Source: Podarcis cretensis (Eukaryota). Taken from it: a stretch of DNA of 64,000 bases. The first letter of the stretch is position 1; each line of letters starts with the position of its first letter. Below the pieces are notes generated by a model that worked only from the letters and a program-made list of their open reading frames with translations, searched no databases and was not told where the DNA came from. Position numbers and translations under genes: made by a program. The stretch is taken from assembly GCA_951804945.1 (NCBI GenBank), contig OX638157.1, positions 50,530,001 to 50,594,000 on the forward strand, in the 5' to 3' direction. Positions 13,274 through 62,859 of the stretch are shown here, in pieces.

Positions 13274-13416
13274 TACATCCACTTTTGCACTTCTGCCATG
13301 CCTTCTTTGACATGCAGTCTCCAGACCATTGTCTCCTCCCTAAGGACCAATCCCATTTCACAAAACCCTAGAAAGCACCCACCTCCAAGCTCATTTTTCA
13401 GTCTGGGCTACTGGTA

Positions 13417-13579
13417 CAGTGGTACCTCTGGTTGCGAACTTACGGTAATTCTTTTTGGAGGTCCGTTCTTAACCTGAAACTGTTCTTAACCTGAGGTACC
13501 ACTTTAGCTAATGGGACCGCCACATGATTTCTGTTCCCATCCTAAGGTAAAGTTCTTAACTGGAGGTACTACTTCCGGC
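13417..13579 (-). mobile_element. Tigger/pogo-type MITE family A, truncated
   Basis: one TIR plus GTTCTTAACCTGA repeats; second TIR absent. Confidence 0.75.
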
Positions 13580-15011: not shown

Positions 15012-15399
15012 CAGTAGTGTAGCGTGGGCGGGGCCCCGAGCACAAAATTCTTAGAAGCACAAAATTTCAAAAGAAAAATAGAGAAAGCAGTAAGAATAAA
15101 TAAAAAATAGTGCACCCTCCTCCTCACACAGAAAATCTCCCAACGTTTGTGTAGGCAGACTGAAGAGCAGATTTGGGTGGCAGCCAGTTGCTAAGGCACA
15201 CTCTGCATGGGCTTTAGAAAGAAACCTGCTCCTGACCAATCCCGCGTCCCCTTCTCTCCCATGCTCAGTGCTCATGAGGTGTTGCGGCTACCACTCAGAT
15301 AGGTCGCCAAGCTCTTGCATCTTCGTTCCAGCCTATTGGCAGGCAGTGGCGATTATATTTGCCTTGCCTTGGGCACTGGTATCCCATGCTATGCCACTG
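15012..15399. mobile_element. non-autonomous hAT element, CAGTGGCGTAGCGTGGG TIR family
   Basis: TIRs CAGTAGTGTAGCGTGGG / CCCATGCTATGCCACTG; 8-bp flanks TATGCTCT / GGTGCTCT (6/8); right subterminus matches left subterminus of the 55596 element (GGCAAGGCAA). Confidence 0.8.
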
Positions 15400-24018: not shown

Positions 24019-24382
24019 AAAGGTAAAGGTAAAGGTACCCCTGCCCGTACGGGCCAGTCTTGACAGACTCTGGGGTTGTGCGCCCATCTCACTTAAGAGG
24101 CCAGGGGCCAGCGCTGTCCGGAGACACTTCCGGGTCACGTGGCCAGCGTGACATCGCTGCTCTGGCGAGCCAGAGCCGCACACGGAAACGCCGTTTACCT
24201 TCCCGCTGGTAAGCGGTCCCTATTTATCTACTTGCACCCGGAGGTGCTTTCGAGCTGCTAGGTTGGCAGGCGCTGGGACCGAGCAGCGGGAGCGCACCCC
24301 GCCGCAGGGATTCGAACCGCCGACCTTTCGATCGGCAAGCCCTAGGCGCTGAGGCTTTAACCCACAGCGCCACCTGCGTCCC
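24019..24382 (-). mobile_element. young Sauria (Squam1) SINE
   Basis: full length, CpG-rich; perfect 15-bp TSD AACCATACTTTAGTA (24004-24018, 24383-24397). Confidence 0.96.
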
Positions 24383-24763
24383 AACCATACTTTAGTATTA
24401 TACTGTAATCCCCAGTTCAGGTGCCATGGGGTTTACTAACCGCAAAGGGCAAAGCTTCCAAAATCGTCTTCTCAGCTGTGCTGGACTATGGTTATTCACT
24501 GTCAGCATTGCATATATAATAGCAGACTGAGGTAAGTCAGTAGTCAGGACCCTTCAGATCAAACAACAAACTAGAAGGCAAGGAGTGGGACTCATGTAAT
24601 AGGACTGGGGGCCATAGCGTTACCAATTTGGGGTGGGTGGTTCTATTCCATGCCTTGGTAGTGAGCTTATGCTGCCCCTCAGGACCAGTACGGCCACCAT
24701 GCTGTTTATCTATATAAAGTTGTTTGGGTAGGACATTCTGGGTTTGGGGTTCTGTCACCAATA

Positions 24764-24989
24764 CAGTGGTACCTCGGGTTAAGTACTTAATTCGTTCCAG
24801 AGGTCCATTCATAACCTGAAACTGTTCTTAACCTGAAGCACCACTTTAGCTAATGGGGCCTCCCGCTGCCGCCGCGCCGCCGCTGCACGATTTCTGTTCT
24901 TATCCTGAAACTAAATTCTTAACCCGAGGTACTATTTCTGGGTTAGCGGAGTCTATAACCTGAAGTGTATGTTACCCGAGGTACCACTG
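24764..24989 (-). mobile_element. Tigger/pogo-type MITE, family A
   Basis: TA|CAGTGGTACCTCGGGT ... ACCCGAGGTACCACTG|TA. Confidence 0.93.
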
Positions 24990-28205: not shown

Positions 28206-28575
28206 CTGCAAGGATACAAAAATACCTGACTTTACTGTGCTATCTGCGCTTTGTACCTGCTTCAATAGTAGACCAAATACAGCGGCTAAATTTTGGGTTA
28301 TTTACCTCTGTAATAAAAGCCCATTCATATAAAGATGGGATATAACCATATTTGATTACTTCATTCCTGGAATGTCTCTATAGAATCACACACTCGTAGG
28401 GTATGAGGTTTAAACATGTTGACATCATACTGTAAATAGGGATGAGAACGAGTGCTTTAAGTGTTGGTTAACAAAATATGCAGCAGGCTACAAAAACCAT
28501 GAATCTTTCAAGGGGAAAGGATAATTGTAACATAGAGGCAGGTGCAGAAAATGCTTTTTAAAAAGAAAATACAAA

Positions 28576-30310
28576 GACTTCCGGGTCGACGCCATCGCCG
28601 AATGGCGGACTCCCTCCGAGCTCCGGAGGGAGTCGGCTGGGTAGGGGTCGGGTCCTGCCATGCCGGCGACGCGGGGACCCTCAAAAACCATGGGCGGAGA
28701 TGCCCATGGACTTGGTGACTCGGCGGGCACCGTTTGCGCCCCCCGACCCGCGAAGGAGCCTTTTTAAAGGCTGCGGAGCGGGTGACGGGGGGTGTGGTGC
28801 TGTGAGTCCAATGCTTCCCCTGCCCAGCGAAGCCGCATGCCATTCGGTGGAAAGCAACGACTTCTTCTTTGAAAATTTCGGATTTGGACTAAAAGGAACA
28901 ACCCGTGAGTAAATTGATTGGACTTAAAAGGGAAATTTGATCTTTGAATTTGGAGCGAGCGGGGGGAGTGCAAAAAGGAAGTCCGCCCCCCCCCTGTTGT
29001 AGATGGCTCAACACAAGGATTTGACAACTAAGATCGAGAGATGAACTTGTTTACCTGAAAAAAAATTTTAACTTCACGAAGGGAAATTACAATAATTGTG
29101 CTGGAGGAGAAGACTGATTTGTGGGAACTAAAATGCAACCCCCCCGGGAACCGGGAACGATCCGCTATGAGAGACTGGTGAAGAGACACAGAAACTTTGA
29201 CAGCTGTCAAAGTAGCTGTCAAAGTAGGAAAATAAAAGAGAACTCTGTTACGATGGCTTTGCTGGTTAGATTTGTTACAATTTGGACATAAATTATTGGA
29301 AATAAAGGCAACAAGTTATTTGACTTTTGGGTCTGATTTTGAAAGAAATTAAGTTACCATATTCCCTCTAGAGGGAGGCTGGGACATTGCAACAGTAGCA
29401 GCAAGTGGAAAAATACTATGAATTTGAGCAGGATCTGTTATCTCTTGGGAAAGCTGCAAAAACGAAGCATTATTTTGTCTACAGAGGTTTCTATACTAAA
29501 GGAGACAATGGATTTATCTATTGAAGAAAGGAAGGGACTTGACGCAAGTTATGTTCCTGAATAACAAAAGCCTCTGTGGAGAACAAGAAGTTTCTGAATT
29601 AGAAGGTTTCTGCAGCAGAACAGGAAAAAGCAACCTGAGGAATAAGAGCTGGACCAAATTTGAAGCCGGAGTATTTGGAACATCCAGACTTTAAAAGGAC
29701 CATGAAATAGAATTTAAGTTAGACTCTTAAACATAGAGGTCTGGATGGAAGAACAATGACTTTTTCTGAGAGTTTTTTCGAGATTGGACTTTCTGAAATT
29801 AAAAGCTATCAAAAGACGGCAAAGTGGAGTTGAGATATAGACGTGGATACACCAGGCTGGCAGTAGACAATGGATGAACTTTGGGGATTGGAACCGGGGA
29901 ATGGGGGGGGGGAGAGAGATTTGGAATCCAAAGGCTGTAAAATTATATATTATTTCTTTCTTTACTTTTTTCATGTTTGTTGTTTGAAAATAGGGGAATT
30001 CGTGGAAGGGAAATGGGGTCGATCTTAGGGAATTATATAAAATATAAGGAGAAATGGTTCATTAAGATAAATAAGATAAATTAATTTGGAATAAATGGGT
30101 TATTTAAAATTACAAATAAGGTTTTAAAATTTGGGGTAAGAATCTGTGGAATCAATTTAAGGGAAATGGAATACAAGAGGGGGAGGAGGGGGAAGGCCGG
30201 GAAAGATGCCACTGAAACCAAGTGTAAATCATATTTGTTTTTTCTTTCTTGCTTGCTATCTTTCCTTTTTATTCTGGAAAATTTTTAATAAATATTATTA
30301 AAAAAATAAA
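28576..30310 (+). mobile_element. non-autonomous L1-mobilised retroelement, 1,735 bp, no long ORF
   Basis: perfect 17-bp TSD TAAAAAGAAAATACAAA (28559-28575, 30311-30327) at a TTTT/AAAA site; AATAAA 30287 plus A-rich tail; CpG-rich 5' end beginning GACTTCCGG. Confidence 0.88.
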
Positions 30311-30949: not shown

Positions 30950-31166
30950 CTAGTGTGACATATAAGTTTTGTTGAATGAACAGAAACAGTGCTTTCAAAT
31001 ACCACTGTGCTATCAAATTCAACATACATGTAAGTGAACAATTGTCAAGGAAATTCAGTGCAATCACAGTTGACTCCCAAAGATGATACTTTATCAAAAA
31101 TGAGGGGAATGGTAAAAAGTTGAAAAGGAAGAGGAAGAGGGTCAAAAGTCTTATAGTGGATGTATA

Positions 31167-31405
31167 CAGTGGTACCTCGGGTTACATACGCTTCAGGTTA
31201 CATACGCTTCAGGTTACAGACTCCGCTAATCCAGAAATAGTGCTTCAGGTTAAGAACTTTGCTTCAGGATGAGAACAATCATGCTCCGGCGGTGCGGCAG
31301 CAGCGGGAGGCCCCATTAGCTAAAGTGGTATCTCAGATTAAGAACAGTTTCAGGTTAAGTACGGACCTCCGGAACGAATTAAGTACTTAACCCGAGGTAC
31401 CACTG
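31167..31405 (+). mobile_element. Tigger/pogo-type MITE, family A
   Basis: TA|CAGTGGTACCTCGGGTTA ... TAACCCGAGGTACCACTG|TA. Confidence 0.94.
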
Positions 31406-31785
31406 TACTGCAAATCAGGGAAAGTGCCATCAAGGTCAATTAAGTTTCACCCACTGAAATGACATACCACATTGTTGCATTATGGAACTGTGGCTTTTTC
31501 TAATGAGATACCACTATGTCACTGAATTCCATTCATGTAAGTGTACACAACTGAACATGTCATGCCTCTTTATGCACCTGAATGCTTCTGTTCTCCCATG
31601 AGTCACCCAAGAAAATGGTAGGAAAGAACTGTTTGCTAGAATACTACCCCAAATATTACCGCATGCTCTGATCCATGCAAACTGCAGAAAAATAACAGTG
31701 CAAAACTCCCAAAATTTTCCAGGTTAATGGGGTTGCAATTAATGAGGAAGCAACTGGCATGGAAATGAAATGAAACTGTCGAAAT

Positions 31786-32452
31786 CATAATGCTGCTATA
31801 CAAATCTATGGTGTGACCATGCTTGGGATACTGTGTCCCATTCTCATTGTTGCATCTCAAAATGAATATTGTGGAGCTGGAAAAGGAAAAGAAAAGAGCA
31901 ATTAAAATATGTAAGGAACTCCCAAAAGGTTACAGCATTTTGCGCTTTTTAAGTTTAGGGAGGGAAAGGCAAGGAAGGTGGGTGGGGAGAGAACATCATA
32001 GAGGTGCATAAAAGTATGCATGTTGCATAAAAAGTGGAGTATTTGTCCCTCTTTCATGAAAGTAGAACTTGGGATCATCCAATGAAGCTGAGCATGGGAA
32101 AATGTAGGCCAGATTAAAGGAACTACTTCTTCATACAGCACATAATTAAAATAAGGAACTTACTCCCTCAAGAGAGGACTAAATAGCCACTAACTTGGAT
32201 GGCTTTAAAAGGGATTGGGGGGGGGGGAATCCTTTGAGTATAAGGCTATCAATAGCTATTAGACATGATGGCTGTACTCTGCCTCCAGTATTGGAGATGC
32301 CATGCTTCTAAATGCAACTTGATGTAGAGAAGAACTGTTGTGCTCTTGTCCTGCTTGTGGGTTTCTCAGAGGCATCTGGTTGGCTACTTTGAGAATAGAA
32401 TGCTAGACTAGGTAGGCCTTTGACCTGATCCAACAGGCCTCTTAGTATGTTT
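31786..32452 (+). mobile_element. CR1 LINE 3' fragment
   Basis: decayed IMLLYKSMV-P-LGYCV...HLKMNIVELEK-KRAIK (CR1 LYKSMVRPHLEYCVQFW...ELEKVQKRATKM motif) followed by the 3' UTR. Confidence 0.88.
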
Positions 32453-36234: not shown

Positions 36235-37029
36235 ACTGCTGTTTTTGATAACCAAGAGCTGGTCATTATTGCTTAGAAGTGAGGAAAATGAAATTTGTTA
36301 TTACTTCACAAATTTCAGGACTGAGCTCTTTTACAGAAAGCTGGTTCAGTAAGCCTGCAACACCTTCCATGGTTACCTGGGATTAAGTCCTGCTAAAGTC
36401 AATGGTGGGAGTATAACTGGATAGGGTTGTGTTATTCCTCTCAGTAACCCCAAAAGGGAGCTTCCAGGCACTAGGCACTGTATTACAACTCAGCTTCTTC
36501 TTAGGGAAGTTATCATGAGTCATATTTGACTATTTTCATACTTATCTTAGTATAAATTAGTTAGTATTCCATTTAATACCTGATATGTCACATTTTCATA
36601 CTCCCATGTCCCTTCCGCAATCTCTTCCTGTTATGCATTCTTTCATGATTATGTGAAATGACACTCCGCTGCCCCCACTTTTCATTCTCCTAGCCCCATG
36701 GTATGCTCCATTTCTCTCTTCCCCCAACCCTTCTCCATAGCCCCTTCCATCTTGCCTTTGAACCAACCTACCAGCTGTGGACATTCTATGCTGAATATCT
36801 CCTACTTGCTCCTTTTTTCCTCCTTGTTCTACACTCTATTTCCTTTTAATCACCATTGCCATTCCTCCCATACATCTTTTTTTGTCAGCCTACTTACTCT
36901 TTTAAATGATCTGGTCTACCCCATTACTACATCAGTTCCCTCATTATGCCTGCCTCTTGTCTTAAATGAAACCTGATGCCTGCCAGTGCTGCCACCCTGC
37001 CCCCACTACTCTAAGAGGAGAAGTGCCAT

Positions 37030-38830
37030 TCCGCCACCGAGGCTTCTCCGTTCTTGCCCACGACCCGTTTGCACGAGTATCAGTCATCCCTTCCCCTTCC
37101 CACCTCCTTCTCTCCCTCTCCTTGCCATTCCACAGGCTCCTTTGGAACAGGTTCCTCTTTCCCCTTGACTCCGTTGACACCTGCTGGCCTCGGCTCCGAA
37201 GCCCCGCCCCCTTCCTCATTGCCATTCTCCAAGCGGCGCTCCTTCACGCCAAAAGACAGAGCGAGCCCGCTCCGCGGTCACGTGCCCCCTCCCCGTCCGC
37301 TCCTGGCGAGGGTTTATGTGCCCCATTCACGAGCGTTACGCGCCAAGCCGAGGAGTGAAACAGTGGTGTACCTTTAAGGCACGTGAGGGAGCGAGGAGCG
37401 CGAGAGAACCCCTGCCGGCACGGCACTAAAACCCCTCCATTAACAATTGCAAACTCGCCTCCTCCGCGACTAAAGGGCGTTCTGGTGGGAGCGCTCCTCC
37501 TGAGGAGGTTAATGAGGGAAGCGGCAAAGACCAGCGGCAGCCTGGAGCTTGCCGGCTAGGAGGAGGAGGAGGAGGAGGAGCAGGGAAAAGAGAAGCTGCA
37601 ACCAGCAGCCTTGGGAGGCTGTGGCAGACCGTAGAAGCCGCTCGCTCCACGCCGGTTCCATCCGCAGACTGCGCGCGTGTCTCGCCTTGTCCGCTCAGCC
37701 CTCGGGTGCTGCGAGAGCGGCTGCCCTCCCCTCACAGGCACCTGGAAGGAGCTGCTGCTGCTGCTGCCTGCTGCCTAAGCCACGCTGCTCGTCCTCTGCC
37801 TGCGGCCGAGCCCTTTCGCTCCTTAGCCGCCACCACAGTCGCTTCCTTTTTACCCCTCGGTTTCCCACCTTGCCCTCCCCGCCCTGGGGAAGGGCAGCTG
37901 ACGCCGGCCACCGAAGCTGCGGGCGAGCACGGAGCAAGCTGGCGGGACTGACTGAGGTGGGCGGGAGAGCCGCGGCAGGAACTGAGGGCGCGCGAGAGAA
38001 AGAACTGTCTGTGTGAGAGGAAAATCTAATCTTGGCGCCAAGAAGCAAGCCTGAGGAGAGCCGCGTCTTTGGGGAGGGGGGCGCGCTCGCGCAAAGCCAT
38101 AGGATCGGACGGCGACGCTGGCCAGGCTTTACTACTGCTGCTGCTGCTGCTGCTGCTCTTCGGCGTGACTGACGCGGCGAAGTTCGACGCAAACGTGTTG
38201 CTCGCCGTCGCCGGCAGCCTCCACCTGCCAGCCCCTGTGGTTGTGGCTCCCGCCGCGCTGCCTTGCTGGAGCCCCGGCTGGCGCCATTCCGCGAAGGTGG
38301 GCGTCACTTTGCCTGCCCTGAGGACCGAGGACACCCAGGTACGCTCCTCTTTCGGGCTTCGCCTGTTGTGGAAGGGCGCGCGGGACGACGGAGCTGGTGT
38401 TGTCTTTCCTCCCGCCCCCCTCCTCCCTTCCTCCTCCCCTCCCGGTTGTGTGTCAAACTTTGCCTTACACATGGCGGTGACAGCTCCCCCCCCCTTTCCC
38501 TCTTCCTCCTCCTTCCCCCTCCCCGCCCCGCTTTCCCAGATGGGTGCGAGTGCCCGAGGTGAGGGCGTTGGGGCTCGAGGAGGAGCCAAGACCCTCCCCC
38601 GTTATAGGAGCCGCTCGAGCCCGCGATTATATAGACGCCTCGTTTCAATAACGGGGCTTCGAGGCGTCAGGTTTTCCTCGTCGCTTATTTTGCTCCGTAG
38701 AAAGAGTTGAGCTGGGTAGGTAAGCAAGTTTTGAAGCTGCAGGAGGAGAGGCCAAGTTTGTCCTTGCTGGCTGCCTCTCGATCCCGGGAGGCGAGGCGAT
38801 TTTGTACCTTAACTTTCACCGCCCTCGCCT
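37030..38830. promoter_or_regulatory. large CpG island, probable bidirectional promoter and non-coding first exon(s)
   Basis: ~1.8 kb of high GC/CpG in AT-rich flanks; GC box 37202-37210, CACGTG at 37279 and 37380, (GGA)n 37558-37579, (CTG)7 38135-38155; + strand donors CAG|GTACGC 38339 and TAG|GTAAGC 38720; - strand donor AAG|GTACAC 37371. Confidence 0.85.
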
Positions 38831-41192
38831 CCCAATCCCTCAGCTGCCTGACAGACACCTCAGCAGTCAAGTGATGAAAATCCTGCAGTTTTAAGTAAAA
38901 GGCTCCTTTTTCCAGGTTTGCATGGATCCAGGATTTGAAAGAAAATGCCGTTAGGTAAACACACTTTCGCTTTGAATGCATCGTATTAAAAACCTGTAAC
39001 GGTTTCTGAAGGTTTGTTTTGATGCGCCTCGCGTAAAAAAAAACTTGCCAATAGACATGTGTTATTTTTAAAAGATCATTTCGCTTGTTTTGGGTTATAG
39101 TAAAAGACTGCGTGTCTTGCGCCTCTATAGTGCTCTCTATGCAGATTATGCTAACTGAAATCTCTGCTTCCCTGAGACTGTTTTTACACAATATGTCAAG
39201 TCCTTTTTTCTTTAATTTTAAAATGCTAGGTAAATATTTAGTAATAAGTTGGACACAAGGTATCCAAAGATTGCTGAAGCCACCTGCTGAATTGTTTTAT
39301 TCCCGCCCCCCTCCTCAGTGCTGGGAGTTAGTTGTTAGCGTTGTACAGACATCCAGCAGATGGAGCAATGGAAAACTGGTACAGTTTCTGCATTATAATA
39401 AACGACCGCTCTCTAATCATAGCTAAATAAAAGGTTATATTGCATACTTTCCCCAAAAGGGGGGGGGGGGACTTGCCTGCTGCTAAAGTTCGTGATTGAT
39501 GGATCTTTTTATTTTCCTTTTTAAAAGGTGTTTATAATAAATTGCTGGTAGCATGTAGTTCATAGTTCTGCTTTTTCTGCCTTAGGTGTATTTCTTTGGT
39601 ATTAATGGCTCCCATTTGTGGGTGTGTGGGTTGTTTTTGCAATGCACAGTGAAAGACTAAATGGTTTGTAGTTAGGAAGGTAGCTCTTTGTGAGTACATG
39701 GCTGTAACTGTTGAAGCTACAAAGGCTGTCTACAATTTAGACAGGTATAATTGGAAAATGTATCAGTTTGCTGCAGATAGTCCCAAGTAATTATACTCAT
39801 TAAATGGTTAATTCAGTATTGCAATGGAAGTTGTCCTGATTGCGAATGAGCAATGACAGAAGTGTTGGTTGCTATGCTACAGCAGTGCGAACTTTTAAAA
39901 ATAAAATTTTACTAAAGACATGAAAATGTTTATGGTTGGGAATGAGTTTTGGTGGTTCTGTTGCTCAGATAAAGATGGCATTCAGCAGGTTATACCTGTT
40001 ACAATTTGGCATCTGTAATATTCACTGTGGCTGCAAGTCCAGAGACCCATTTTGGCAGTTCCTCACCACCAAACATCTTCTATGACTACAAGTTAAAGCT
40101 TAATTTTATAATTGGTCTGCACTTGAATATAGACTACAATCTAATGTAGCCAGTTCGAAAACTGTAGCTGTTTTAAAGCATGATCAAGGTGAAGTTTAGT
40201 GCCTGTGTATACTATTGATTTTAATCATGTGCTTTAATTTTCCATTGATTTTCATTGGACAGTAGAATGTACAACTTTGGCTGCATTATGCTCTTTGATA
40301 GCCATATTGATAATTTCCTATAAACGAGTGCTTATTGTGCCTCTTAGTTGGGCATTAACTATTAGGGAGGAATGTGGGTTAATTTTTGTTACTTGATGAG
40401 TATATGTAGTAGAAGGGGCAATGCAGAAGAAACCCATTTTGTTGTTAAATTTTCTATTTGCCTTCTAAAACTTTATTTGTCACCCTTTTGTGTTAATATA
40501 CATGCTGTATTCACTTATCCAAAAGTGAAGTGGGATATTCAAAAACAAAGTTTTAAAGGTGTTTGCAAAACATAACCCTACACTACATTGAGGACTGCTG
40601 GAGGGAATAATGCATTATTAAAATAGATTCTTTTTCAGGCTTGATGTGTATTGTCTTATAACCTTAAAGCAAATGCCTTTTTTAAAAAAAGTTTTTTTGG
40701 GGAGGTATTTGGGGTCTGGTTTTATAGATGTAACTATGTTCAAGCATTCAGAAGATTCTGTCCTCACTGATGTTAGCACCTCTTGATCATCTTAGATGCA
40801 GCTACTTCAGCAGGGTGTCTGCTTATCTGTTGGTCTTTAAGATTGGTCTACTTTTTGTTGCAGTAAGATTGTGGTTCAAGAGCTGATCTAGAAAGCTGTT
40901 TTAAAACAATTTAAGTATATTCTGTCTCATTGCAATCTAAGTCAGCTTCATTCAAAGTAATTACCTATTTGGGTCAAGTTGATAATTAAGTCAAGAGTTC
41001 TTAAGAAAAAGCAAAGCCTCTACCATCTGGTTAAAGTAGATGTTCCAGGTACATATTTATTTCTGTTCCTTTATTGAAATACTTCCCCTTGGGTTTATCC
41101 TCAACTACCACCATGCCTTTCCATGTACACTGGAAGCTGCAGCTGTTGTGGCACCTATAGGTGCTTGTTGTTGCTCATACTTTCTTCTAGGT

Positions 41193-47906: not shown

Positions 47907-48287
47907 GGGACGCGGGTGGCGCTGTGGGTAAAAGCCTCAGCGCCTAGGGCTTGCCAATCGAAAGGTCGGCGGTTCGAATCCCTGCGGCGGGGTGCATCCC
48001 CGTTGTTCAGTCCCAGCGCTGCCCAGTCCCAGCGCTGCCAACCTAGCAGTTCGAAAGCACCCCCGGGTGCAAGTAGATAAATAGGGACCGCTTTATAGCG
48101 GGAAGGTAAACGGCGTTTCCGTGTGTTGCGCTGGCTCGCCAGATGCAGCTTTGTCACGCTGGCCACGTGACCCGGAAGTGTCTCCGGACAGCGCTGGCCC
48201 CCGGCCTCTTGAGTGAGATGGGCGCACAACCCTAGAGTCTGTCAAGACTGGCCCGTACGGGCAGGGGTACCTTTACCTTTACCTTTA
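47907..48287 (+). mobile_element. young Sauria (Squam1) SINE, same subfamily as 24019
   Basis: GGGACGCGGGTGGCGCTGTGG head, (CCTTTA)n tail, TSD CAAGTCATTGT (47893-47903, 48288-48298); internal 16-bp tandem duplication CAGTCCCAGCGCTGCC. Confidence 0.96.
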
Positions 48288-49500: not shown

Positions 49501-50658
49501 GTACTGGAGAAAGTGTTGAATCTTCTGGTTTTGCACCTTAGATGAGATTTTCAGAGGAATGGTAGTGTTGGTATCTGTATGCGTTTTCACAATTGCACAC
49601 CAGTCACCAGTAGAGCAAATCATAACTGAGATCTGTTATACTGTGGTAAGAATGGATGGGAATGCTCACATTGGGGACTGTGTGCTAGATTCACTTTTGC
49701 TTTTGGAAATCTATACTGATCGTTCAAGCATTGATTTGGTGCAAATTTGTTTTAAGCTAGTGTCTAGCTCAAATCAACAATGTGCAAGCACTTGTGACTG
49801 CAATTAACAGTAAGTGCAAGTTTCCATCTTATATTTGTAATTTTGGAAAGCAAAATGTGTTTTTAATTCTTACTTGTAAACTAATAATTGCATGATTTTC
49901 ACTGTGACAGATATGGTTGGCAATGAGTCAGACTTCTACAATGAAGCATATGGTCTGGTCTGAACCATATAAACAGCCCTTGAAAATGGTTTAACATATA
50001 ATTTCTTCTTGGAAACAAATAATTAGCATCTCCAGCAAGCTATTTTGCATATATGTGTGCACATTATGAAGTAAGTAGACATTAAAAAGCCATTAAGGTT
50101 ATAAGCAGATCTATAAAAGCAAATTAAAAATAAAGAATTAGTCATAAGTAGTCAGGAAAGAGTTCAGTGGGGTTTGAATGCACAATCATACTCTTGACGT
50201 AAGAAATAATACTTGTCCCCAAACCTATCTCAGGGATGAAAGGAGCATTCTTTACTTTTAAGTGAACTACAACTTGATTAACTGAGTAAAGAGCATGCAA
50301 AAATGACAGCTCAGGCTATATTAACCTAACCCAGTATCAACCATTTTTATTTTTGATCAGAAACAGGCTCCCCATTACTGTCATATCTTGCCTTTCCTTG
50401 GAGCACAGATGAACTTATTTGTCCTCTGTAATCCTGTAAGATCAGACAGCATCTTATGAGGGTGGTTTTCAGTTCCAAGGTTCCATGTATGCAAGAAAAA
50501 TTGTATATACCCAAGCCCTTGGAGCTGCCCCATGGCTAGTGGGTATGGGGAGAGAGAGTAGCCCAAGTACTCCTAGAGCCCATGCACCAAATAGGACTTG
50601 TCCAGTAAACAAAGTGAAGAGCTTAAAAGCTCCTTTTGCGCTGAGTAACCTAAGCAAT

Positions 50659-51012
50659 GGGATGCGGGTAGCGCTGTGGGTTAAACCACAGAGCCTAGGA
50701 CTTGCCAATCAGAAGTTTGGCGGTTCAGATCCCCGCAACGGGGTGAGCTCCTGTTGCTCAGTCCCTGCTCCTGCCAACCTAGCAGTTCAAAAGCACATCA
50801 AAGTGCAAGTAGATAGGTACCGTTCCGGCGGGAAGGTAAACGGCATTTCCATGCGCTGCTCTGGTTTGCCAGAAGCAGCTTAGTCATGCTGGCCACATGA
50901 CCCGGAAGCTGTACACCGGCCCCCTCGGCCAGTAAAGCAAGATGAGCTCCACAGCCCCAGAGTCGGTCACGACTGGACCTAAATGGTCAGGGGTCCTTTT
51001 ACCTTTTACCTT
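50659..51012 (+). mobile_element. Sauria (Squam1) SINE
   Basis: head and tail intact; TSD TAACCTAAGCAA (50646-50657, 51013-51024). Confidence 0.95.
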
Positions 51013-51656
51013 TAACCTAAGCAAAGTTGACATAAAAAGAGACCATAAGCTCCTTGCCTTACTTAGGGGGCAAGGCCTATTTGGCTTGCTGGCTCTGGAA
51101 GGCCAGGGATGCTCACATGAAAATTAATGACAACTTGAATGTCCCCACAATATTTCACGAGAATATCCTCAGGCTTGGATTTAACCTGCACAAGTTCAAC
51201 CCACCCACCTCCAACGGTGTATGGTCAAAATTGTGAAAGTTAAATGAGCATAAGATGTGATTTTACTGTACTGAGCTTCAATTCTTTAATCTTCCCCTGC
51301 GCTCGCATGTTGTCTTCAAATACCTTACTATTATATCAATCTACTGCTAACTTACCTCTGGGCTGGTACTTGGACTCATACTGTGTCCTGCATGTAGACC
51401 TTACGACAAGAAGCCATGATCCATAGACTTGCCCTCCATGAATTTTTCTAACTCCTTTTAAAGCCATCTAAGTTAGTGGGCGTTACAGTGTTTTGATAGT
51501 TGTGGATTCCATAATTTTAATGCATTCTGTGTGAAGACATCCTCCCTGTGAATCCTGTCCAGTCAGTTCAGTTGGATGATCCTGAGTTCTAGGAAGAAAA
51601 CGTATCTCTTTTCACACAATGTACAATGTTGCAAACACCTGTCATTCACCATTGTA

Positions 51657-51882
51657 CAGTGGTACCTCGGGTTACATACGATTCAGGTTACAGACTCCGC
51701 TATCCCAGAAATATTACCTCGGATAAAGAACTTTGCTTCAGGATGAGAACAGAAATCGTGCTCCGGCGGCGCGGCAGCAGCAGGAGGCCCCATTAGCTAA
51801 AGTGGTGCTTCAGGTTAAGAACAGTTTCAGGTTAAGAACGGACCTCCGGAACGAATTAAGTACTTAACTTGAGGTGCCACTG
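51657..51882 (+). mobile_element. Tigger/pogo-type MITE, family A
   Basis: TA-flanked TIRs; body matches 31167 copy. Confidence 0.93.
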
Positions 51883-54800
51883 TATTCTGTGGTTGCAACA
51901 CAGATTTTTATTACAGGAGTTAAGATACTGGCAGATACATTTTTGGTTCAGTTCCCAACAGTGCCTAATATGGATTTTGCCTCCCCCCAACCCACAAAGC
52001 TGCAACATACTGAATCAACACATTGTAATAAAATCAACCTCATTCTCATAATGATGGAACATGCAATACTAGTTGTCATTGCATTGAGTGGTGACAAGCA
52101 GAAGGATAAGTATAAATATTATAGTATTATAGAACAGTAGCCGAAATGTGCTCTTGCTTTGTACAGTGTGTTGTGTGTTAATTTTCATTATTAAAATTGT
52201 CAAAGAACCTTAATAATTGACTTCCTTTCTGCCATAATACAGTATAGATCTGAGCCTTGAGCTTTCACAATATGCCACTGTGTTGTCAAACAAACATTGC
52301 AGAGGAAGTGAACTCCTTTTACAGCACAGTACTGTTGCTTCTTCAACATGCTGTCAGCATTTGACAAAATACCTAAACAAAATTATAGAAGAATTAGCAA
52401 ACATTGATCTTGATCTGGATTGCAAGCATGTATGTTTATAAGATATAACACACAAATATTGTGTAGCAGTAATGGGAAAAGATAAAATCAGATCTATTGA
52501 TGGGCCACTTCCAAGTTTTTTTGCTTTTGGACATATGGTTTCTGTGGATTGGTATTTTTGTCATCAGTCGGCCCCCAGATTTAGAGATGGAAACAAGCCT
52601 TTTACTCGTTTCACTTTCCCTTCTTCTCTTTCTAGCATGCTGCAATAAATCAAAGTCTTCAACTTAGAATAGTTTCCCAAAATGTCAAAGCCAGGTAACT
52701 CTGATTACTAAACTAGAACCTTAAAACAGCAATTTGAAGTTAGTTCAAGATGCTGGCTTGTTCCAAACATGGTAATCAGTTTCATAGATGTAACAGGAAA
52801 CTGGCTAATTGATTGGAGATGCTTATGTTTAACTGTGGTACACCAAAGATCGAAAGAGTTATATGTGTGGGAACAAGGATTGTTGATATTTTGGCTTATT
52901 GAACTAGCTCTGAGTGCATGTGCAACAACTTCTGCCTTCTTTATCTTGAGTGAAAAATCTGGATTGTCACCAACCATCTGGATGAGAAGAGCCTGCCATA
53001 AATACCCTCATGTAACCTTAATACAATGTAAAATTTTATGGCTTGCATTGTAAGCTACTTTGGGAGCCAGACTTGTCTAAACCAGGCTCTCAGGTCCATC
53101 TGCAGCAACTTCTGTCATCATCCTCTGGATGCAAGAGTCATTTAAAACTGGGTATAAATAAAAGTGATAGTCTATAAATCATACTGTTGGGAACTACAGT
53201 GAAGGTCTTGGGAAACATCACAATAGCGTCTACTCCACAAAACACATTAATTTATATTCTCTATCTGTCACTTGCTAAATGAATTTGTAGAAAGTTTAAT
53301 GACAGCCTTTATACTTCATATTGAATAAGTTATTACTGGCCCTCACCATCTCATTAGCAGGAAAGTGACTGCATTTCTGATCCCTCCACCCCTTTGTGGC
53401 TCTACACTTCAATATTTTCCATTATGTCAGTTGAAAATTGAGAAATTTTCAGCTAATGTGGTATGAAATGATAGAATTTAAGGGACAGGGATTAAAAAGA
53501 TTTGCTTTCTAAAATACACTTGGCAGAAATGTAGTTTTTTTGTAATATAACATCATTGCACATGGATGAATGGAACAGAAACCTTCAGATTACAATATGA
53601 TGAAATCAATGGCAGGCTTAATGGAAAATGACAATGAAAACTATTTTAAATATAAATATAATAGAAAATCAATATTAAATTACTACTCAGTAGTCTTATG
53701 TCCAATAAAGGGTAAATGAAATTATTGTTATCTGAAAGTGAATTTAGTTGGTGTGATTCTCAAAGAGCAGATAAAATGTTTCTACCATTTTTAGTACCAT
53801 TTTAGATGTATTAACACACTGCTAAATTCCATCTTCCGTTGTTAATCCTTCTCCCTGTGTTAGATTTACCATGCAACTTTAAGTGGGGTAAAAAGTAAGG
53901 TTTAAAGTGATGGATTGGCCATGATTTTCAAAGCCTGGCTGTTTAGAGCAACAGCTGTGTAACAAGAGTTTAGGAAAGAAATCTCTGCATATATTTAGTA
54001 AGTTCTGAAAGGGAGCCTTGTGAAAGAAAGTTTCACTCATGCAAGGGAGTGGCACACACACTTTACACTGAACAGTCCCAATGCTGAATCCTACTTGGGT
54101 TCCCCAACCCTTAGCAGGATATTTTGAGGAGGCACTGGAGACTCAAGCAGGCATAAGGATACAGGAAAAACCCAGTTTTGTACATCTCACAGTGCTTAAG
54201 ATCCAGTCCATTGTCTTGTATGAATCAAGTTGATTAGATATATCTATGTATTCAAAATAAAAACACAGTAAAATGAGGAAGCACAACTTATTCAAGGATG
54301 CATTCTGGTGGTGCTTTATTCCATCTTCCTGATGTTTCCTTACCCATTAAATTTTGTATTTTGCATGCTCTTTCACAGACATAAAAGCCACTTATGCTAG
54401 ATTCCACTATATAAAGTGAATAAATATTAACAATAACAATTACTACTACTACTCTTATTTCCAGAAGTTCAGTGCTCATTTCTGTGTTTTCAGGGAGGGG
54501 AATCCATTTGCAATCCCCTTAACTCAAAAAATTGTGAAGTTTTGTGTTGTGATTTTCCTGCAGTCTTCATGATCATACCTAAGCCTTAGCTTAGGGACTG
54601 CCACAGAGAATGCTCTTTTGGGTTACCTTTTACCAAGAAGAGCCTTTTAACACCAAAGAGGGTCTGTAGGAAAGGAGGTGATCTAAATCATGTAGGGCTT
54701 TACATGTAACTAATACAAACTCCAATACACTTTTAAAATTATTTAAAAGTTTTAATCTTAACTGATTCATATATTCTATGGTTCTAAATACATTTACTCT

Positions 54801-55689
54801 GAAGCAAACTCCATTGCTTTTACCCCAGCACTTTTTTCAAGTACATGAGCCTATGCTAGCAGACTTAGGGTCACATAAAAACTGGCCAGAGAAGTAATAA
54901 TGTTGAAATTAGATGAGACCTAACCTTTCAAACTGTTTTGTGACAGATACCATCTGGGCATACAAGGAAAGGATATAGAAAAAGGTGTAAGACTTGTCTA
55001 ACCCCTCTTTCTTCAGTGTGATCATTTGATATAAAAGAGGTTGCTGGAAGTTCCATTTCCTTTTACTATATGTTAAAGGTGCTGAATGTAACCTTTGTCA
55101 CTGCCTCTTGAGAGCTCTTACATAAAGCCATTTTCATCTAAATTGAAAGCTTCTCATAGTCAATAATCACTTTATATAGAGGTCATATATATTATCTATT
55201 GGTTCAGCTATCACATTAAGGTGCTTTATTGTAGAGAATTCTTCTAGATGAGCTGCTTGATCTTGTTTGGTTAAAATCCAATGGTGTAGTGAATAAGTCA
55301 CTTAATATCTACATAAAGTGAATCTGCAGGCAAGTATGATTAAGTCTTCTCCTGATATTTGCTGTTCCATTTTTTTTTTAAAGTACTTCCAGCAATGCAG
55401 CAAATGTGTCTGACATTTGGTTTCCAAAGCATAAAAAATAAAAAATTGTAATTCTTATCAGAGAACCATGAAAAAGGAATGAGTACTTTTTGCAAAGCTT
55501 TAACTTAATTGTTCCACACGTCAACTTTTAAGCTGTGCATTTGAGCTTAGAACCCTGTGAAAGCTGACTACGTAATGCTTAGCATGGTGAATGACCAGTG
55601 GCGTAGCGTGGGTTGTCAGCACCCGGGGCAAGGCAAGTAATTTGCGCTCCCTAACCCGTGGATTTTAGCACTCGAGTCTCTTCCACTAG

Positions 55690-55822
55690 ATTTTTCCCAG
55701 GCCTCTGGTTAAGTGGGAGGGTTACTGTTTTTGTTTGATACTATGTTATGTATTTTTGTGTTCTTATATTGTAAGCTGCCCCTGTGATCCTCAGAGGAAG
55801 GGCAGCATAAAAATTAAATAAA
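55690..55822 (+). mobile_element. L2-clade LINE 3' tail (inside hAT cargo)
   Basis: TGTAAGCTGCCCCTGTGATCCTC..GAAGGGCAGCATAAAAATTAAATAAAT. Confidence 0.7.
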
Positions 55823-55946
55823 TTTTAAAATTGAGACAATTTCATAGTAACACAGCAAGAATTTCATAACATAGTGTATGTTATAGTAAAACAGTAACAT
55901 AGTCTTATTCACAGATACTTTGTGTCTTAAGACACGAGTGGTAGTA

Positions 55947-56173
55947 CAGTATCCTGAACAGTAGTTCGCATCCTGAACAGAACGTAAGACGCGACAGTGC
56001 ATCTGCGCGTGTCGCGTTTCGCCGCTTCCATGCATGCGCGTGACGTCATTTTTATCGTCTGTGCATGCGTAAGCGACAAAACCCAGAAGTAACACGCTCC
56101 ATTACTTCCAGGTCACCGCAGAGCGCAACCCGAAAATACTTATCCGAAGCGTATTTATCCCGAGGTACGACTG
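55947..56173 (+). mobile_element. Tigger/pogo-type MITE family B, left end rearranged
   Basis: right TIR GAGGTACGACTG|TA; body similar to 13057 and 57645. Confidence 0.8.
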
Positions 56174-56645
56174 TACGAACTTAATCTGTTCTGGAAGTCC
56201 GTTGTTAAACCAAAGCATTCTTAAACCAAGGTGTGCTTTCCCATAGCAGCGGGGGACTCAATTTACAAATGGAACTTGCTCAAGAAGAAGAGGAGGAGTT
56301 TGGATTTAATATCCCGCTTTAACACTACCCGAAGGAGTCTCAAAGCAGCTACCATTCTCCTTTCCCTTTCTCCCCCACAACAAACACTCTGCGAGGTGAG
56401 TGAGGCTGAGAGACTTCAGAGAAGTGTGACTAGCCCAAGGTCACCCAGCAGCTGCATGTGGAGGAGCGGGGAAGCGAACCCGGTTCCCCAGATTACGAAT
56501 CTACCGCTCTTAACCACTTCACCACCCTGGCTCAACAGGAAGTGAAACATGTTCTGCTTCCAAGGCAAAGTTCACAAACCAAAACACCTACTTCTGGGTT
56601 TGCAGTGTTCTTAATCCAAGTTGCTCATAAACTAAGCTGTTCTAA
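56174..56645. mobile_element. third Tigger-type MITE (both ends lost), split by a SINE
   Basis: ACTTAATCTGTTCTGGAAGTCCGTT and TTCTTAAACC motifs related to family A; continues after 56534 (GGCAAAGTTC..TACTTCTGGGTT). Confidence 0.65.
56284..56533 (-). mobile_element. Squam3-type tRNA/CORE SINE
   Basis: minus strand GAGCCAGGGTGGTGAAGTGGTTAAGAGC A-box, GGTTCGCTTCC B-box, GTGACCTTGGGCTAGTCAC CORE, (CTT)n tail; GCTCAA on both sides. Confidence 0.9.
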
Positions 56646-57248
56646 GCTATTGTAGCATAGCAGCTAGGAGACTAGGTTATGAATCTGTTCAAATCTCACT
56701 AGGTGAACTCTCTCCCCGCCACCAACCTCCAGCTTTACTTACCTTTGCTGGGCTGTGTGCAAGCCACACATTAAAAGGGCATGACTTTCCCCAAAGTATC
56801 CTGAGAGCTGCAGTTTTCTAAGGATGTTATGAATTACCAGGATACTTTAAGGAAGTCAGGTGCTTTTACTATCCCTTCAGGATTGGCATGAGATTAGTGG
56901 TTGGGGCCGAAATTGCGTGCGGCCAACCCCACAACCTTGCATGCACACACACTGGCAAATATCCCTCCTCAACTGATCCAGGCAGACCAGCTGTAATCTG
57001 CTTATTAGCCCCACTGCACACACCAAAAGAGCAATCAGATGAAGGAAAGAAAGCTATTTGTATCCCGATCTAGGCACCTCAGCACATGTCTGCTTTATTT
57101 TTTATCATTTTTATTTGTTGCCCTCGTTGCCAAAATGAACGAGGTCTTGGGCTGCAGAACAATGTGCTAATTAGTCTTCCAAGGTTGCTTAAAAATAACA
57201 ACTAAACAATGTGAATGAATGCAGGAAAGCACTATACAAAGTTCAGTA

Positions 57249-57473
57249 CAGGGGTACCTCAGATTACAGACGCTTCAGGTTACATACACTTCAGGTTACA
57301 GACTCCGCTAACCCAGAAATAGTACCTCGGGTTGAGAACTTTGCTTCAGGATGAGAACAGAAATCGTGCAGCAGCGGCGCAGCAGCAGTGGGACGCCCCA
57401 TTAGCTAAAGTGGTGCTTCAGGTTAAGAACGGACCTCCAGAACGAATTAAGTACGTAACCAGAGGTACCACTG
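57249..57473 (+). mobile_element. Tigger/pogo-type MITE, family A
   Basis: TA-flanked TIRs. Confidence 0.92.
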
Positions 57474-57644
57474 TATTATTATTATGCATTGAAATTTCAA
57501 GTCACAGGGAGGCCACCTCTGGCAAAACTTTGATTGGTAATACATTTGGGACAGACCTAAGAAAATGTTTCTTCACATAGGGTGTAATCAAGGAACCACA
57601 TGTACACCACCCTGTGTTCCATTATGGAAGAAAGGTGCTTGATA

Positions 57645-57892
57645 CAGTGGTACCTCTGGTTGCGAACGGGATCCATTTTGGAGCCCCGTTTGCAACATGA
57701 GCAGAATGCATACCACATCTGCACGTCTGTGTGTGCCGCGATTTGCTGCTTCTGCGCATGACATCATTTTGAGTGTCTGCGCATGCATGAGCGGCAAAAC
57801 CCGAAAGTAACCCTTTCCAGTACTTCCGGGTCTCCGCAGGACGCAACCTGAAAAGATGTAACCTGAACCGATCATAACAAGAGGTATGACTG
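57645..57892 (+). mobile_element. Tigger/pogo-type MITE, family B
   Basis: TA|CAGTGGTACCTC ... GAGGTATGACTG|TA. Confidence 0.9.
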
Positions 57893-57911
57893 TAGAATAA
57901 AAAATAAATAT

Positions 57912-58131
57912 GTGGTTATGATGACCACAGGCTAAGATGTCTTTAAAAGCTGATTAGGGCTAAATGGGATCCTCAAGATTTCATGCCACTAAATAGTTAC
58001 GAGGAGAGGCTGGCAACAGCCAGGGAGAGTGATCACCTTCATAGACCTGCCTGTACGCCTATTAGATGCATCTGTCTGCAGGAAAGCTGGCCTAGATAGG
58101 CCTTTCGTCTGATCCAACAGGTTTCTTCTTA
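57912..58131 (+). mobile_element. highly decayed CR1 3' UTR (inside hAT cargo)
   Basis: CTAGATAGGCCTTTCGTCTGATCCAACAGG..TTCTTA end as at 32400-32450. Confidence 0.65.
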
Positions 58132-58272
58132 CCTCCTTAATTTCTACTGAAATTCTCCAAGTCACTGTCTTTCAACCTAATGTGCCTCAGAAGGTTGTTT
58201 TGCAGATAAAATGGGGAATGGACAACCCTGTACACCACCTTTGAGTTCCTAGGGAGGAAAAAGTTGGAGGGG

Positions 58273-58288
58273 AAAGAAAGAAAGAAAG

Positions 58289-58327
<39 letters not shown>

Positions 58328-58333
58328 GAAAGA
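58273..58333. repeat. (GAAA)n microsatellite
   Basis: direct reading. Confidence 0.95.
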
Positions 58334-58929
58334 ACATTTTACCAGTGGCGCAGTGACAAAATTCATTCTACATCTACTTCCTTTGAAACCGTTGCTTCGT
58401 GTGTTATGAAATATAATACACAGAAGAAAGAGATTGCTGTATAAATACGATTTACTAAAGAGAAAATAATCCCCTTTTTAAAAATATATTTTTTTAAAGG
58501 TGGGGGATGGAGAGAAACCTACAGCTGTTTAGAATAGGACCTATAATTCAGAAAAGGAAATCTTTTTACAGTTAAAGCTAAAGAGGAAGTACAAGCCAAA
58601 TACAGAATTACTACTATGATTATCATTATCATTATCATTATTTATACCCCGCCCATCTGGCAAGGTTTCCCCAGCCAGGGCAAAGGAAAGTATGTTCGTG
58701 GGAAGGTGCTAGGCAAGATTTGAATGCAAAAAAAGATATTCCCAAACAACAAGATGAGATTGTCGTCATTGGGGGGCGGGGGGGGGGTGAGATTCCTGTG
58801 TCCTTAAACACACCAGAAAATCAACAGGTACAAATTTCACATGGGGCAGGTGGGTGGGAGAGGCCGGAATAGGGTGCAAAACACTTCCAGGGGTTGAATT
58901 CCTGCACTGTTCGGAAACTCCCACCCAAC

Positions 58930-59520
58930 CTTGTAAGCAAACGGATGGCCAGCCAGGGAAAGTACGCGGAGAGGCTGCAAAGTGGGGCAGAAGCAGAAAG
59001 GAAGAGATGAAAAGGGGCGACGACTGAGAACGCGGCGGGTCACGCGTGCGGAGTGTTGCGCAAGCAAGGGAGCCATGGCGTCGCGCAAGAGCGGCCCTCC
59101 TTAGCCCGGACACTACCTGCCCGCCCGCCCGTGAGCGTGCCCCCCTACCCTTCAGCTAGCCGACAACGGCCCAGGCGAAGGCCCGATTCTGTCACGGGCG
59201 GAGTGGCCCGCCCCGGCGTTCAATCACAGCAGCGGCACGAGCCCCGCCCACAAAAGTCGCTCGAAGCTCCCCGATCCCTCCCCATCACGTGCCGTGACTT
59301 CCCCAATAGGAACAAGATTTCCGCTTTGGAATGCTCTTCATTCAAGCCCCACCCCTCTCATGGCAACTGCTTCTGCTCCGGGTTGGCGGTGGGCAGAGCT
59401 TGAGGGGGGCTGGGCTTTGCGCCCGGCTCTGAGAGAGAGAGAGTGAGCCAGGTAGGGGCAGAGAGCTGTGAGTGCAAGCGCGCGCCCCCAGATGTTGCGC
59501 CCGGTGCGGCCGGCCCCCCC
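58930..59520. promoter_or_regulatory. CpG island with housekeeping-promoter motifs, located inside the hAT element
   Basis: NRF1-like TGCGCAAGCA 59057, GCCATGGCG 59072, GC boxes 59196/59207/59242, CACGTG 59286, CCAAT 59303. Confidence 0.75.
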
Positions 59521-61527
59521 TGCACCCCCACGCTACACCACTGTGAATGACTGAACATCAGCTTGCTGTTGGAAGGTGCTAAGCTCCTTGGCAGCAGTAG
59601 TTTAGAAAAGCAAGTATTTCTGTTAACCCATTCCCTTAACACCAGGAAGCCAGTTAGTGCTCTGAACCAGGTTCTCTGTTCACCAAACATTCAGCTGATG
59701 TGTTGGAAAATATCTGTGTGAATTTGAATTTCACTAATCTAAATCAGATTTAAGTCCTTTATCCACCTACCTGGGGGTAAGCCCCACTGAATTCAGTGAG
59801 GCTTAACTTCTGAGCAAAAATGTATACAACTGCTGTGTCAGGAGCAAAGTTACCTTGCCTTTCTTCATATGCCAGAATGATTTGTGCTATCAGAAATATA
59901 ATTGGAGGGAAAGGATCCAGAATGCTTTCCCCATTTGTTGTTGTTTTTTTTATAAATAGAATAGCCTTACATTCAAAATGTCATCACATTTTGGGCATGA
60001 ATGACATTCAGAGTAAAAAAAAAAAAATCAAATGGAAGGTAAGCAATGCTCAGAATTAACTACTCAGCTGTTTTTGCAACTAGTCCTTGAGGTAGCTACC
60101 GTAAAATTATAATACAGTTAAAACTAATTTAAAACAATACATTAAAACTTCAGTAAATTTAAAACATGGCACGTAGCAAATAAAAATAAACATATATCCA
60201 TTTAAGCCCAAATATGTTACAGAAAGGGAAGGGAAATATCATGGCCAGCTTGCTAAAAAATTAGGAGAGCTGTACTAGTGAGCATCCCTTGATAGGAGGC
60301 TTTTGCTCCCACTTAACATATTTCCTCTCTTTGCTTGATATACCAGGGTGTGAATATGAACTCTCCACACTGAATCTAGGTGGTAACATAGCTCTTGAAA
60401 TGCCTTTAAGTGAAAAAAGAGACGACAGTAGGGAAATTGACAAAAAGTATTAACTCAGATATTGAGTTGTGCCTAGGATTTTCAGCATACTATTATTTGA
60501 TTTGCAGATAGACTTGTTTAAACCTTTCAGACATTAAACCTTTATTCAAAGGAATGGTTTTTGCTGCAATCTACTTATCTGGGAGGAAGCCCTACTGAGT
60601 ACAGTGGTATGTACTTCTGTGTAGTAAATAAGCATAGGGATAGGATGAAAGGCTACCTGTTGAGAATATAGAGCCACGAAGGCATATTGTGATGGTCAAA
60701 TTGGAACCTAGAACTGCATGCCCACTTTCGTATAGTTAAACAAAATTATGGAAACTTTATTGTAAAGATTATCCTGCCATGGTAAATAACACTTGGGAGT
60801 TTAATTGTCCTCTTGCTTCCCCCATATGTTGCTATTCTTATCCTTGGTCTGTCATTTTCAGATCCTATTTCTGATAGCATGTAATAAAAATAGACCTGGT
60901 TTTATCAATGGAACTCTGACATTTTGTAAAGCTATTTTATAAACTACCCAAATTATGTATAAAACCTGAGTAACTGATTTCATTACAGTGAAATTGTCAA
61001 GATTTCCCACACAGCCGTTTGCTTTTGTCAGAAAGAAAAAAACATACCTACTGTTTTCCCGCATCTTTGTCAAGTAATGTTTTCTATTGTTACAGCACTG
61101 GCAAAATTTGTTAGTTTTTATGCCATTGGTGTTTTGTTGTTGAACTTTCTGTGTTGCTAGCTGCTGTGTGCTTATGCATTCTCCATTAGAAGTGCTAATT
61201 CTGGGCCAAACTACTTGTTACATTAAACAGTGTACTTAACCAACATGCTTTACACTGCTTTTTCTTTTAAAGAAACACAGCAGCTGTAATTCATGTTCCT
61301 GATTATTACTATTATTGCGAGCCCACATGCTAAACCCTGTCCCCAGAGCCCACCACCCAGAAATGAGACATGACAACAATGTATGGGATTAACATTGGGC
61401 CACAACTTTATTGAATAAAAGTTGATCTTTTATATTTATATGTAATTTTAATTCCATAAAACTTTATTTTTTATTGTTAAGTATACAACTGACAATAAAA
61501 AACAAAGTTATATGGAATTAAAACTAC

Positions 61528-61589: not shown

Positions 61590-61736
61590 GAGCATACTTT
61601 TAACATTTCCATGTAATTTACTCTTCATGCTATCTGAGTGGTTGGAAACAAACAGTTAGGACTTGCAACTGATATGGTATTGTTGCTTCCCATGCCAATA
61701 CCCATGGCCTCCTGGGAAGAAGCATGTGTGGGATAA

Positions 61737-62081
61737 AGGTAAAGGGTAAAGGGACCCCTGACCATTAGGTCCAGTCGTGGCTGACTCTGGGATTACGGCA
61801 CTCATCTCGCTTTACTGGTCGAGGGAGCCAGCGTACAGCTTCCGGGTCATGACTAAGCCGCTTCTGGCGAACCAGAGCAGCGCATGGAAATACCGTTTGC
61901 CTCCCGCCGGAGCGGTACCTATTTATCTACTTGCACTTTTGATGTGCTTTCGAACTGCTAGGTTGGAAGGAGCAGAGACCGAGCAATGGGAGTTCACCCC
62001 ATCGCAGGGATTCAAACCGCCGACCTTCTGATCAGCAAGTCCTAGGCTCTGTGGTTTAACCCACAGCGCCACCCACGTCCC
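61737..62081 (-). mobile_element. Sauria (Squam1) SINE
   Basis: TSD ATGTGTGGGATAA (61724-61736, 62084-62096); head and tail intact. Confidence 0.95.
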
Positions 62082-62859
62082 ATATGTGTGGGATAACTAG
62101 CCTCATATAACCAACATGCTTAAGACTAATCAATGCATTAAGACATTAAAATGATAGAGTAACCTGCCCTGCCAGGCTTAGCGTACTTTGGGAGGAAATG
62201 GATAATCAAGCCTGTTGTTCCCCTTGCCAATTTGCCTGAGAAGCTCAAGGTGTGAGGAGGTATGAGCTCCAGTTCAGACCTCGTGGCTTTCATGAGCCAC
62301 TCATATACAAATAATTTATAAACTTTCACCACTTTGGAACTAAACCATGTTTTACTGCCTATGCAATTTTTTTGATTGCTGTATGGAAAAGCACATAAAA
62401 CTGATCTTTTTAAAGTTTGTAAGTAAGCCATTTTTCACGTACCAAACATGTGGTCTTTTTCTGTGGTAGGGGAAGAAGGAAGTTTGAGAGCTCACAAGGG
62501 CTTATTTTAAGGGTCTAACTGCCTATATTTCCATGTTTTACTTTTGTGATTTTAAATCTTTGCTAGGGTTCTTTCCACAAAGAGTACTTACTTGCCTCAA
62601 ACTTGGATCCTAGCATCAAATCCAGGGAATTCTCCTTTTATACTTATTTTTCCCTTGCCACCAACAGCATGTTAGTAGGAGAAGTAACCATGTATGTTGC
62701 CCAGATCATCAGGGCATCCCCCAGATGTTTGCCAGCACAGTGAGAGAAGCAACCTTGTAGAATCAGCTTTAATATCTGGATTGTATAAGAATTTGTCCTT
62801 GATCTTTTTTAATATGGGGAGGAGCCTGGGTCTCCCTGTGCAGGACCTGTTGTAGTTAG

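Follow-up and report, generated by a model that had tools for sequence, protein, structure and literature searches.

A 64,000-nucleotide stretch of the genome of the lizard Podarcis cretensis (contig OX638157.1, positions 50,530,001 to 50,594,000; hereafter the window, numbered from its first letter) contains a 3,948-bp element at 55596-59543 that has a hAT-type transposon end on either side and a CpG island in its interior. One hAT-type integration accounts for the element, and nothing that lies between its ends, not even the CpG island, is native to this place. Judged by its ends, the duplication that flanks them, and a sibling copy elsewhere in the window, the element is assigned to the hAT superfamily as a non-autonomous member. 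Only about 55-130 bp of transposon-derived sequence have been kept at each end, and the remainder reads as cargo. The structure itself is solid; as an instance of cargo capture by a hAT transposon, we regard the element as a good candidate and not as a demonstrated case.

The outermost sequences of the element form a pair of 17-nt terminal inverted repeats (TIRs). On the plus strand, TGAATGAC runs directly into CAGTGGCGTAGCGTGGG from position 55588 on the left, and CCCACGCTACACCACTG runs directly into a second TGAATGAC that ends at 59551 on the right. The two TIRs are identical at 16 of 17 positions, with a CpG-to-TpG change as the lone difference, and the two TGAATGAC copies, both directly outside the element ends, are identical at all eight. 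A YARNG-type start motif is the rule for hAT TIRs, and both repeats begin with CAGTG. The hAT-type assignment was made because the ends start in this way and because the duplication is 8 bp long, as in hAT elements. When TGAATGAC is compared with the hAT target preference nTnnnnAn, the A at position 7 is present and position 2 is a G instead of a T, a comparison that concerns one site only. Six copies of the 8-mer are present in the window, where 2.7 would be expected; what counts is its position outside both ends, and a match at 8/8 nucleotides in fixed positions has a chance probability of about 1.5e-5.

To place this arrangement against the background of the whole window, all identical 8-mer pairs spaced 50-10,000 bp apart (17,825 pairs) were scanned for 17-nt inverted repeats that lie directly inside the pair and differ by no more than two mismatches. 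Only three pairs passed, namely, the one that flanks this element and two that derive from another miniature inverted-repeat transposable element (MITE), of which two copies lie in inverted orientation. No 8-mer-flanked 17-nt inverted repeats were found in 20 block shuffles of the window.

A sibling of the element, a 388-bp hAT-type MITE, resides in the same window (Table 1). Its flanks, TATGCTCT and GGTGCTCT, match at six of eight positions and represent a decayed 8-bp duplication, while its two ends match each other at 13 of 17 positions. Together, these comparisons amount to six differences over 25 paired sites. In the element, the ends and the duplication show one difference in 25 paired sites, which is a CpG transition; of the two, the MITE at 15012-15399 is clearly the older. 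About 55 nt of the left end of the element resemble the right end of the sibling MITE at a score that was reached in none of 500 shuffles. The homology between about 50 nt of the right end of the element and the left end of the sibling is weak (p about 0.008). Because each end is homologous to the opposite end of the sibling MITE, the two ends of the element are taken to complement each other as ends of one hAT-type family, properly oriented toward one another. In the right subterminal region, TTGCGCCCGG occurs twice in direct orientation, at 59417 and 59495, and the inner limit of the right end was therefore set near 59416. The interior of the element shares nothing with the interior of the sibling. 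No autonomous partner with a hAT transposase and matching ends was detected inside the window, and a literature search with the end sequence gave no match.

With the shuffles empty, an 8-bp match that is so improbable at fixed positions, no Ns in the window, and two ends that correspond to the two opposite ends of the sibling MITE and are properly oriented to each other, it is hardly credible that two unrelated solo hAT ends merely share a flank by chance or that the contig was misjoined in assembly. An earlier sequence-only reading of this DNA had named 55596 and 59543 as lone hAT ends that form inverted repeats, had noted the same 8-mer exactly outside both, and had proposed that positions 55595 and 59552 were once adjacent. 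These proposals are upheld: the flanked arrangement is unique in the window apart from the MITE-derived pairs, and both ends belong to one and the same hAT-type integration.

Table 1. Positions of the element's parts, of the repeats in its interior, and of its sibling MITE
Feature	Position	Strand	Remarks
Left copy of the 8-bp target-site duplication, TGAATGAC	55588-55595	.	Directly outside the left end
Right copy of the 8-bp target-site duplication, TGAATGAC	59544-59551	.	Directly outside the right end
Left 17-nt TIR, CAGTGGCGTAGCGTGGG	55596-55612	+	
Right 17-nt TIR, CAGTGGTGTAGCGTGGG (minus-strand reading)	59527-59543	-	
Left subterminal region	55596-55650	+	Homologous to the right end of the MITE at 15012-15399
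Right subterminal region	59416-59543	-	Last ~50 nt weakly homologous to the left end of the sibling MITE
CpG island	58850-59415	.	~0.6 kb; adjoins the right subterminal region
MITE-B1	55944-56176	+	TA-flanked family with ends TACAGTGGTACCTC; left end absent; CpG-rich
Old MITE-A-like copy, two pieces	56164-56232 and 56546-56645	-	Interrupted by the SINE
tRNA-derived short interspersed nuclear element (SINE)	~56284-56545 (left boundary approximate)	-	Inserted in the old MITE-A-like copy
MITE-A	57244-57477	+	TA-flanked; 92.5% identity to the consensus of four other window copies
MITE-B2, full-length	57640-57894	+	TA-flanked; decayed CpGs (14 CpG)
(GAAA)n microsatellite	58272-58327	+	
Sibling hAT-type MITE, 388 bp	15012-15399	Opposite to the element	Shared ends, two mismatches each

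The interior is a mixture of repeats and unique sequence. Recognizable repeats cover only about one-third of it, and some 2.5 kb, island included, is unique within the window. The unique interior stretches, with a GC content of 0.40-0.43 and a CpG observed/expected ratio (o/e) of 0-0.42, are like bulk vertebrate DNA; the flanks of the element have a GC content of 0.34-0.36 and a CpG o/e of about 0.1. Elsewhere in the window, MITE-A is represented by five copies, of which four are full and one is partial and diverged. The old MITE-A-like copy, which is split by the SINE, has 82% identity to the four-copy MITE-A consensus, with 74 gap columns. MITE-B1 contains 25 CpGs in 250 bp (o/e of 1.6) and carries TGACGTCA and GCATGCGC motifs, while its siblings at 57640, 13054, and 42705 have 14-17 CpGs each and show TG/CA decay. 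MITE-B1 is either a much younger insertion or has been shielded from methylation. Matches to the translated SINE were found in a Podarcis muralis protein (72%) and in two ENA contigs. The (GAAA)n tract may be the tail of a repeat at 58082-58264; sequences weakly matching that repeat lie at 7780-7871 and 32398-32443.

The ends and the interior of the element appear to differ in age. From the single difference in 25 paired sites, a divergence of about 2-3% since integration was estimated, roughly 2% for each copy. If the ends were as old as the split MITE-A-like copy, one difference or none in 25 pairs would be met with a probability of only about 0.001. That copy, and hence the DNA around it, probably predates the integration. 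Since it is much more decayed than the hAT ends, the interior would have arrived by transport or by copying and would not have been put together in place. We treat this age argument as suggestive only. It bears directly on the possibility that a short hAT MITE landed here and that the 3.7 kb was then built up by successive repeat insertions, as might be supposed from the at least five other repeat copies in the interior, recognizable pieces with ends of their own. Such growth in place is very unlikely in view of the greater apparent age of the split copy and of the small share that repeats have in the interior, which leaves the unique sequence and the island to be explained.

The CpG island lies beside the right end. 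By thresholds of at least 500 bp in length, a GC content of at least 0.55, and an o/e of at least 0.65, the segment 58850-59543 (island plus right end) is a CpG island, with 694 bp, a GC content of 0.64, and a CpG o/e of 0.74; in the island core (58960-59300), the o/e rises to 0.99. Promoter-type motifs are visible in it, among them GC boxes, an inverted CCAAT box, and CACGTG. A CCATGG at 59075-59078 provides an ATG on both strands, from which the plus frame ends after 9 codons and the minus frame runs for 83. The sequence-only reading had described the interior as ordinary host-like DNA with MITEs, a SINE, (GAAA)n, and a CpG island, devoid of a transposase, and had considered the island to be imported. 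The interior does look like ordinary genomic DNA that is old, CpG-depleted, and repeat-laden; its MITEs are backed by window copies and its SINE by the translated match, and the microsatellite was confirmed as well. A Pfam scan of the 20 longest stop-to-stop frames of the interior returned no domain and no transposase remnant. That the island was brought to this spot follows under every model except an artifact.

The element might also be one member of an ordinary multicopy family of long non-autonomous hAT transposons, in which case the CpG-rich block beside the right end would be the family's own repeated sequence. The island indeed grades into the GC-rich right end with no sharp boundary, and other CpG-rich patches in the window are repeats (at 24019, 47907, 50658, and 61734). 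However, the window holds no second copy of the interior parts, the known MITEs aside, and the interior, in which several older repeats of unrelated kinds lie amid unique DNA poor in CpG, does not resemble a compact family consensus. We consider this origin doubtful, and a family of this kind would still have started by a capture.

The history that we favor, to which we give about an even chance, is that a ready-made unit with older genomic cargo was transposed here as one non-autonomous hAT element. At another locus, two hAT ends would have come to bracket older genomic DNA, either via template switching while a hAT MITE was being repaired or because two nearby copies contributed their outer ends. 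With a hAT transposase provided in trans, the whole unit would then have been excised and inserted here, duplicating TGAATGAC. The cargo would have consisted of the nest of MITEs and SINE, the microsatellite, CpG-depleted unique sequence, and the CpG island of about 0.6 kb beside the right end. We infer that this cargo was already inside at landing, that it is host-derived and not a long-standing sequence of the transposon family, and that it was moved by transposition.

Several points weigh against this history. The age argument draws on 25 paired sites only, the old MITE copy may belong to a subfamily that is not quite that of the four-copy consensus, and the age of the nested MITE-A (92.5%) is not significantly different from that of the ends (P about 0.12). 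Moreover, nothing ties the island to a gene, and a protein search with the island's plus frame (59053-59400) and minus frame (58840-59100) retrieved no relatives. A control search with the SINE frame gave only three matches, which indicates that the protein database barely covers nongenic lizard DNA; because of this control result, the blanks from the island carry no weight on its copy number. Two repetitive FN3 proteins (E value of about 1e-4), retrieved with the island frames in an all-length representative search, were judged to be chance matches. A degenerate pattern of the left end and a 27-mer from the island had no match in metagenome and prokaryote contigs, as expected for collections without lizard DNA.

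The same arrangement could have arisen by gap filling in place. In this case, a short hAT MITE would have landed with the TGAATGAC duplication, and a break in it would have been repaired by copying about 3.7 kb from elsewhere. Gap filling of a resident element has been concluded to be the main origin of single-copy animal Pack-TIRs, TIR elements with unrelated sequence between their ends, of which 370 have been catalogued, 208 of them hAT (Tan et al. 2021, Nat Commun, PMC8277862). It predicts an identical structure of ends, duplication, and foreign interior, and a cargo older than the ends fits it equally well. However, the parental copy lies within 15 kb in 57% of the published cases, whereas our search of the window, which covers 55 kb upstream and 4.4 kb downstream of the element, revealed no parental copy, a result that weakens local gap filling. 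In the published cases, the median cargo is 224 bp and the median loss to the gap is 4.6% of the element (PMC8277862), while here the cargo measures about 3.7 kb and only the termini are left. Because no parent was found nearby, the cargo has about 16 times the length of the median published one, and nothing but the termini has been retained, transposition of a ready-made unit is favored over in-place filling, which we hold to be unlikely.

A further-reaching proposal concerns the function of the cargo. We find it quite improbable that a whole, functional CpG-island promoter and its first exon were captured from a host gene and are now unmethylated and starting new or chimeric transcripts. The insertion looks young; therefore, the intact CpGs of the island are no sign of an unmethylated state or of activity, and at the divergence estimated since insertion (about 2-3%), they would largely survive even if methylated. 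In the same promoter-shuffling proposal, the cargo would have been set down about 17-20 kb downstream of an island that belongs to another gene, and the event would be one of many in lacertid lizards in which hAT elements captured the starts of genes in a burst. We see just a slim chance for the proposal as a whole. If true, the promoter proposal would represent transposon-mediated promoter shuffling in an amniote.

Other features of the window were recorded alongside the element. The native CpG island at 37000-39000 extends over 2 kb, with a GC content of 0.62 and an o/e of 0.78. Neither a coding exon nor a Pfam domain was found in the long open frames of this island or across the window. The sequence-only reading had placed the element, as probable, in an intron of this island's plus-strand transcript; no exons of such a transcript were found in the window. 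A CpG-rich repeat of about 370 bp is present at 24019-24383, 47907-48286, 50658-51016, and 61734-62083, as well as at 3368-3538, with 72-90% mutual identity. Its copies constitute most of the CpG-island-like patches of the window outside 37-39 kb and are unrelated to the island of the element; CpG-rich patches in the Podarcis cretensis genome are often repeats. Another CpG-rich patch, at 28500-29000 (GC content of 0.55, o/e of 0.91), has no other copy in the window. Sites of the MITE-A family are located at 15-268, 13415-13581, 24760-24979, 31165-31407, 51667-51886, and 57244-57477 (six in 64 kb). The family is TA-flanked, has ends TACAGTGGTACCTC in common with the MITE-B family, contains internal 16-bp tandem units, and lies about 7% from its consensus. 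A hairpin with 17-nt arms that are 88% complementary was noted at 56772-56868; an Rfam match of this hairpin to plant MIR1512 was below threshold (30.8 bits versus a gathering value of 79) and was dismissed as chance or as a small palindromic repeat. A tRNA search found no tRNA.

Among known systems, the macrotransposons of the maize Ac/Ds family show that two hAT ends can mobilize several kilobases of host DNA as one unit and leave a single 8-bp duplication. Unlike the element described here, such composites are predicted to contain internal, inward-facing hAT ends. The only candidate that we encountered is an end-like 13-mer at 58343 (two mismatches), which is at chance level (about 1.4 expected per window), and the 200 nt beside it scored at the level of shuffled sequence against all hAT ends. 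A two-copy macrotransposon was thus rejected. Plant Pack-MULEs and other Pack-TYPE elements resemble our element in being non-autonomous TIR elements with nontransposon cargo, which in their case consists of host gene fragments, with a bias to GC-rich gene 5′ ends (PMC8903248, PMC5861414). Pack-MULEs differ in belonging to the Mutator superfamily, in their 9-bp duplication and long TIRs, and in an exonic cargo of several hundred base pairs with identified parents.

The closest counterparts are the animal Pack-TIRs and Pack-hATs. Cut-and-paste capture of host DNA is well documented in plants, and a catalogue of animal cases has become available only recently, most of them being fragments some 200 bp long from local repair. 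Cargo capture by animal hAT elements has already been published (Tan et al. 2021, PMC8277862), with hAT-N8_XT of Xenopus tropicalis, which carries the 5′ untranslated region of CAPSL, as one example. The main text of that study makes no mention of lizards, Anolis, or reptiles. According to the same study, multicopy Pack-TIRs originate when template switching is followed by transposition, and they favor GC-rich cargo. Our element agrees with the animal Pack-TIRs in its hAT ends on both sides, its target-site duplication, its nontransposon interior, and the absence of a transposase, and it resembles the multicopy group in having GC-rich cargo reminiscent of a gene 5′ end. TIR-element sequence lies on both sides of an unrelated interior, as in a Pack-TIR. 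The element is therefore a candidate that works like a Pack-TIR; full membership requires a parental copy, of which the 64-kb window contains none. It departs from the published animal cases in the size of its cargo (about 3.7 kb versus a median of 224 bp) and in the presence of other repeats and a whole CpG island inside. We conclude that the element is a probable new case of a published phenomenon, with an unusually large, island-bearing cargo. If a cargo of 3.7 kb with its island was moved as a unit, hAT elements of amniotes would be able to relocate complete regulatory modules.

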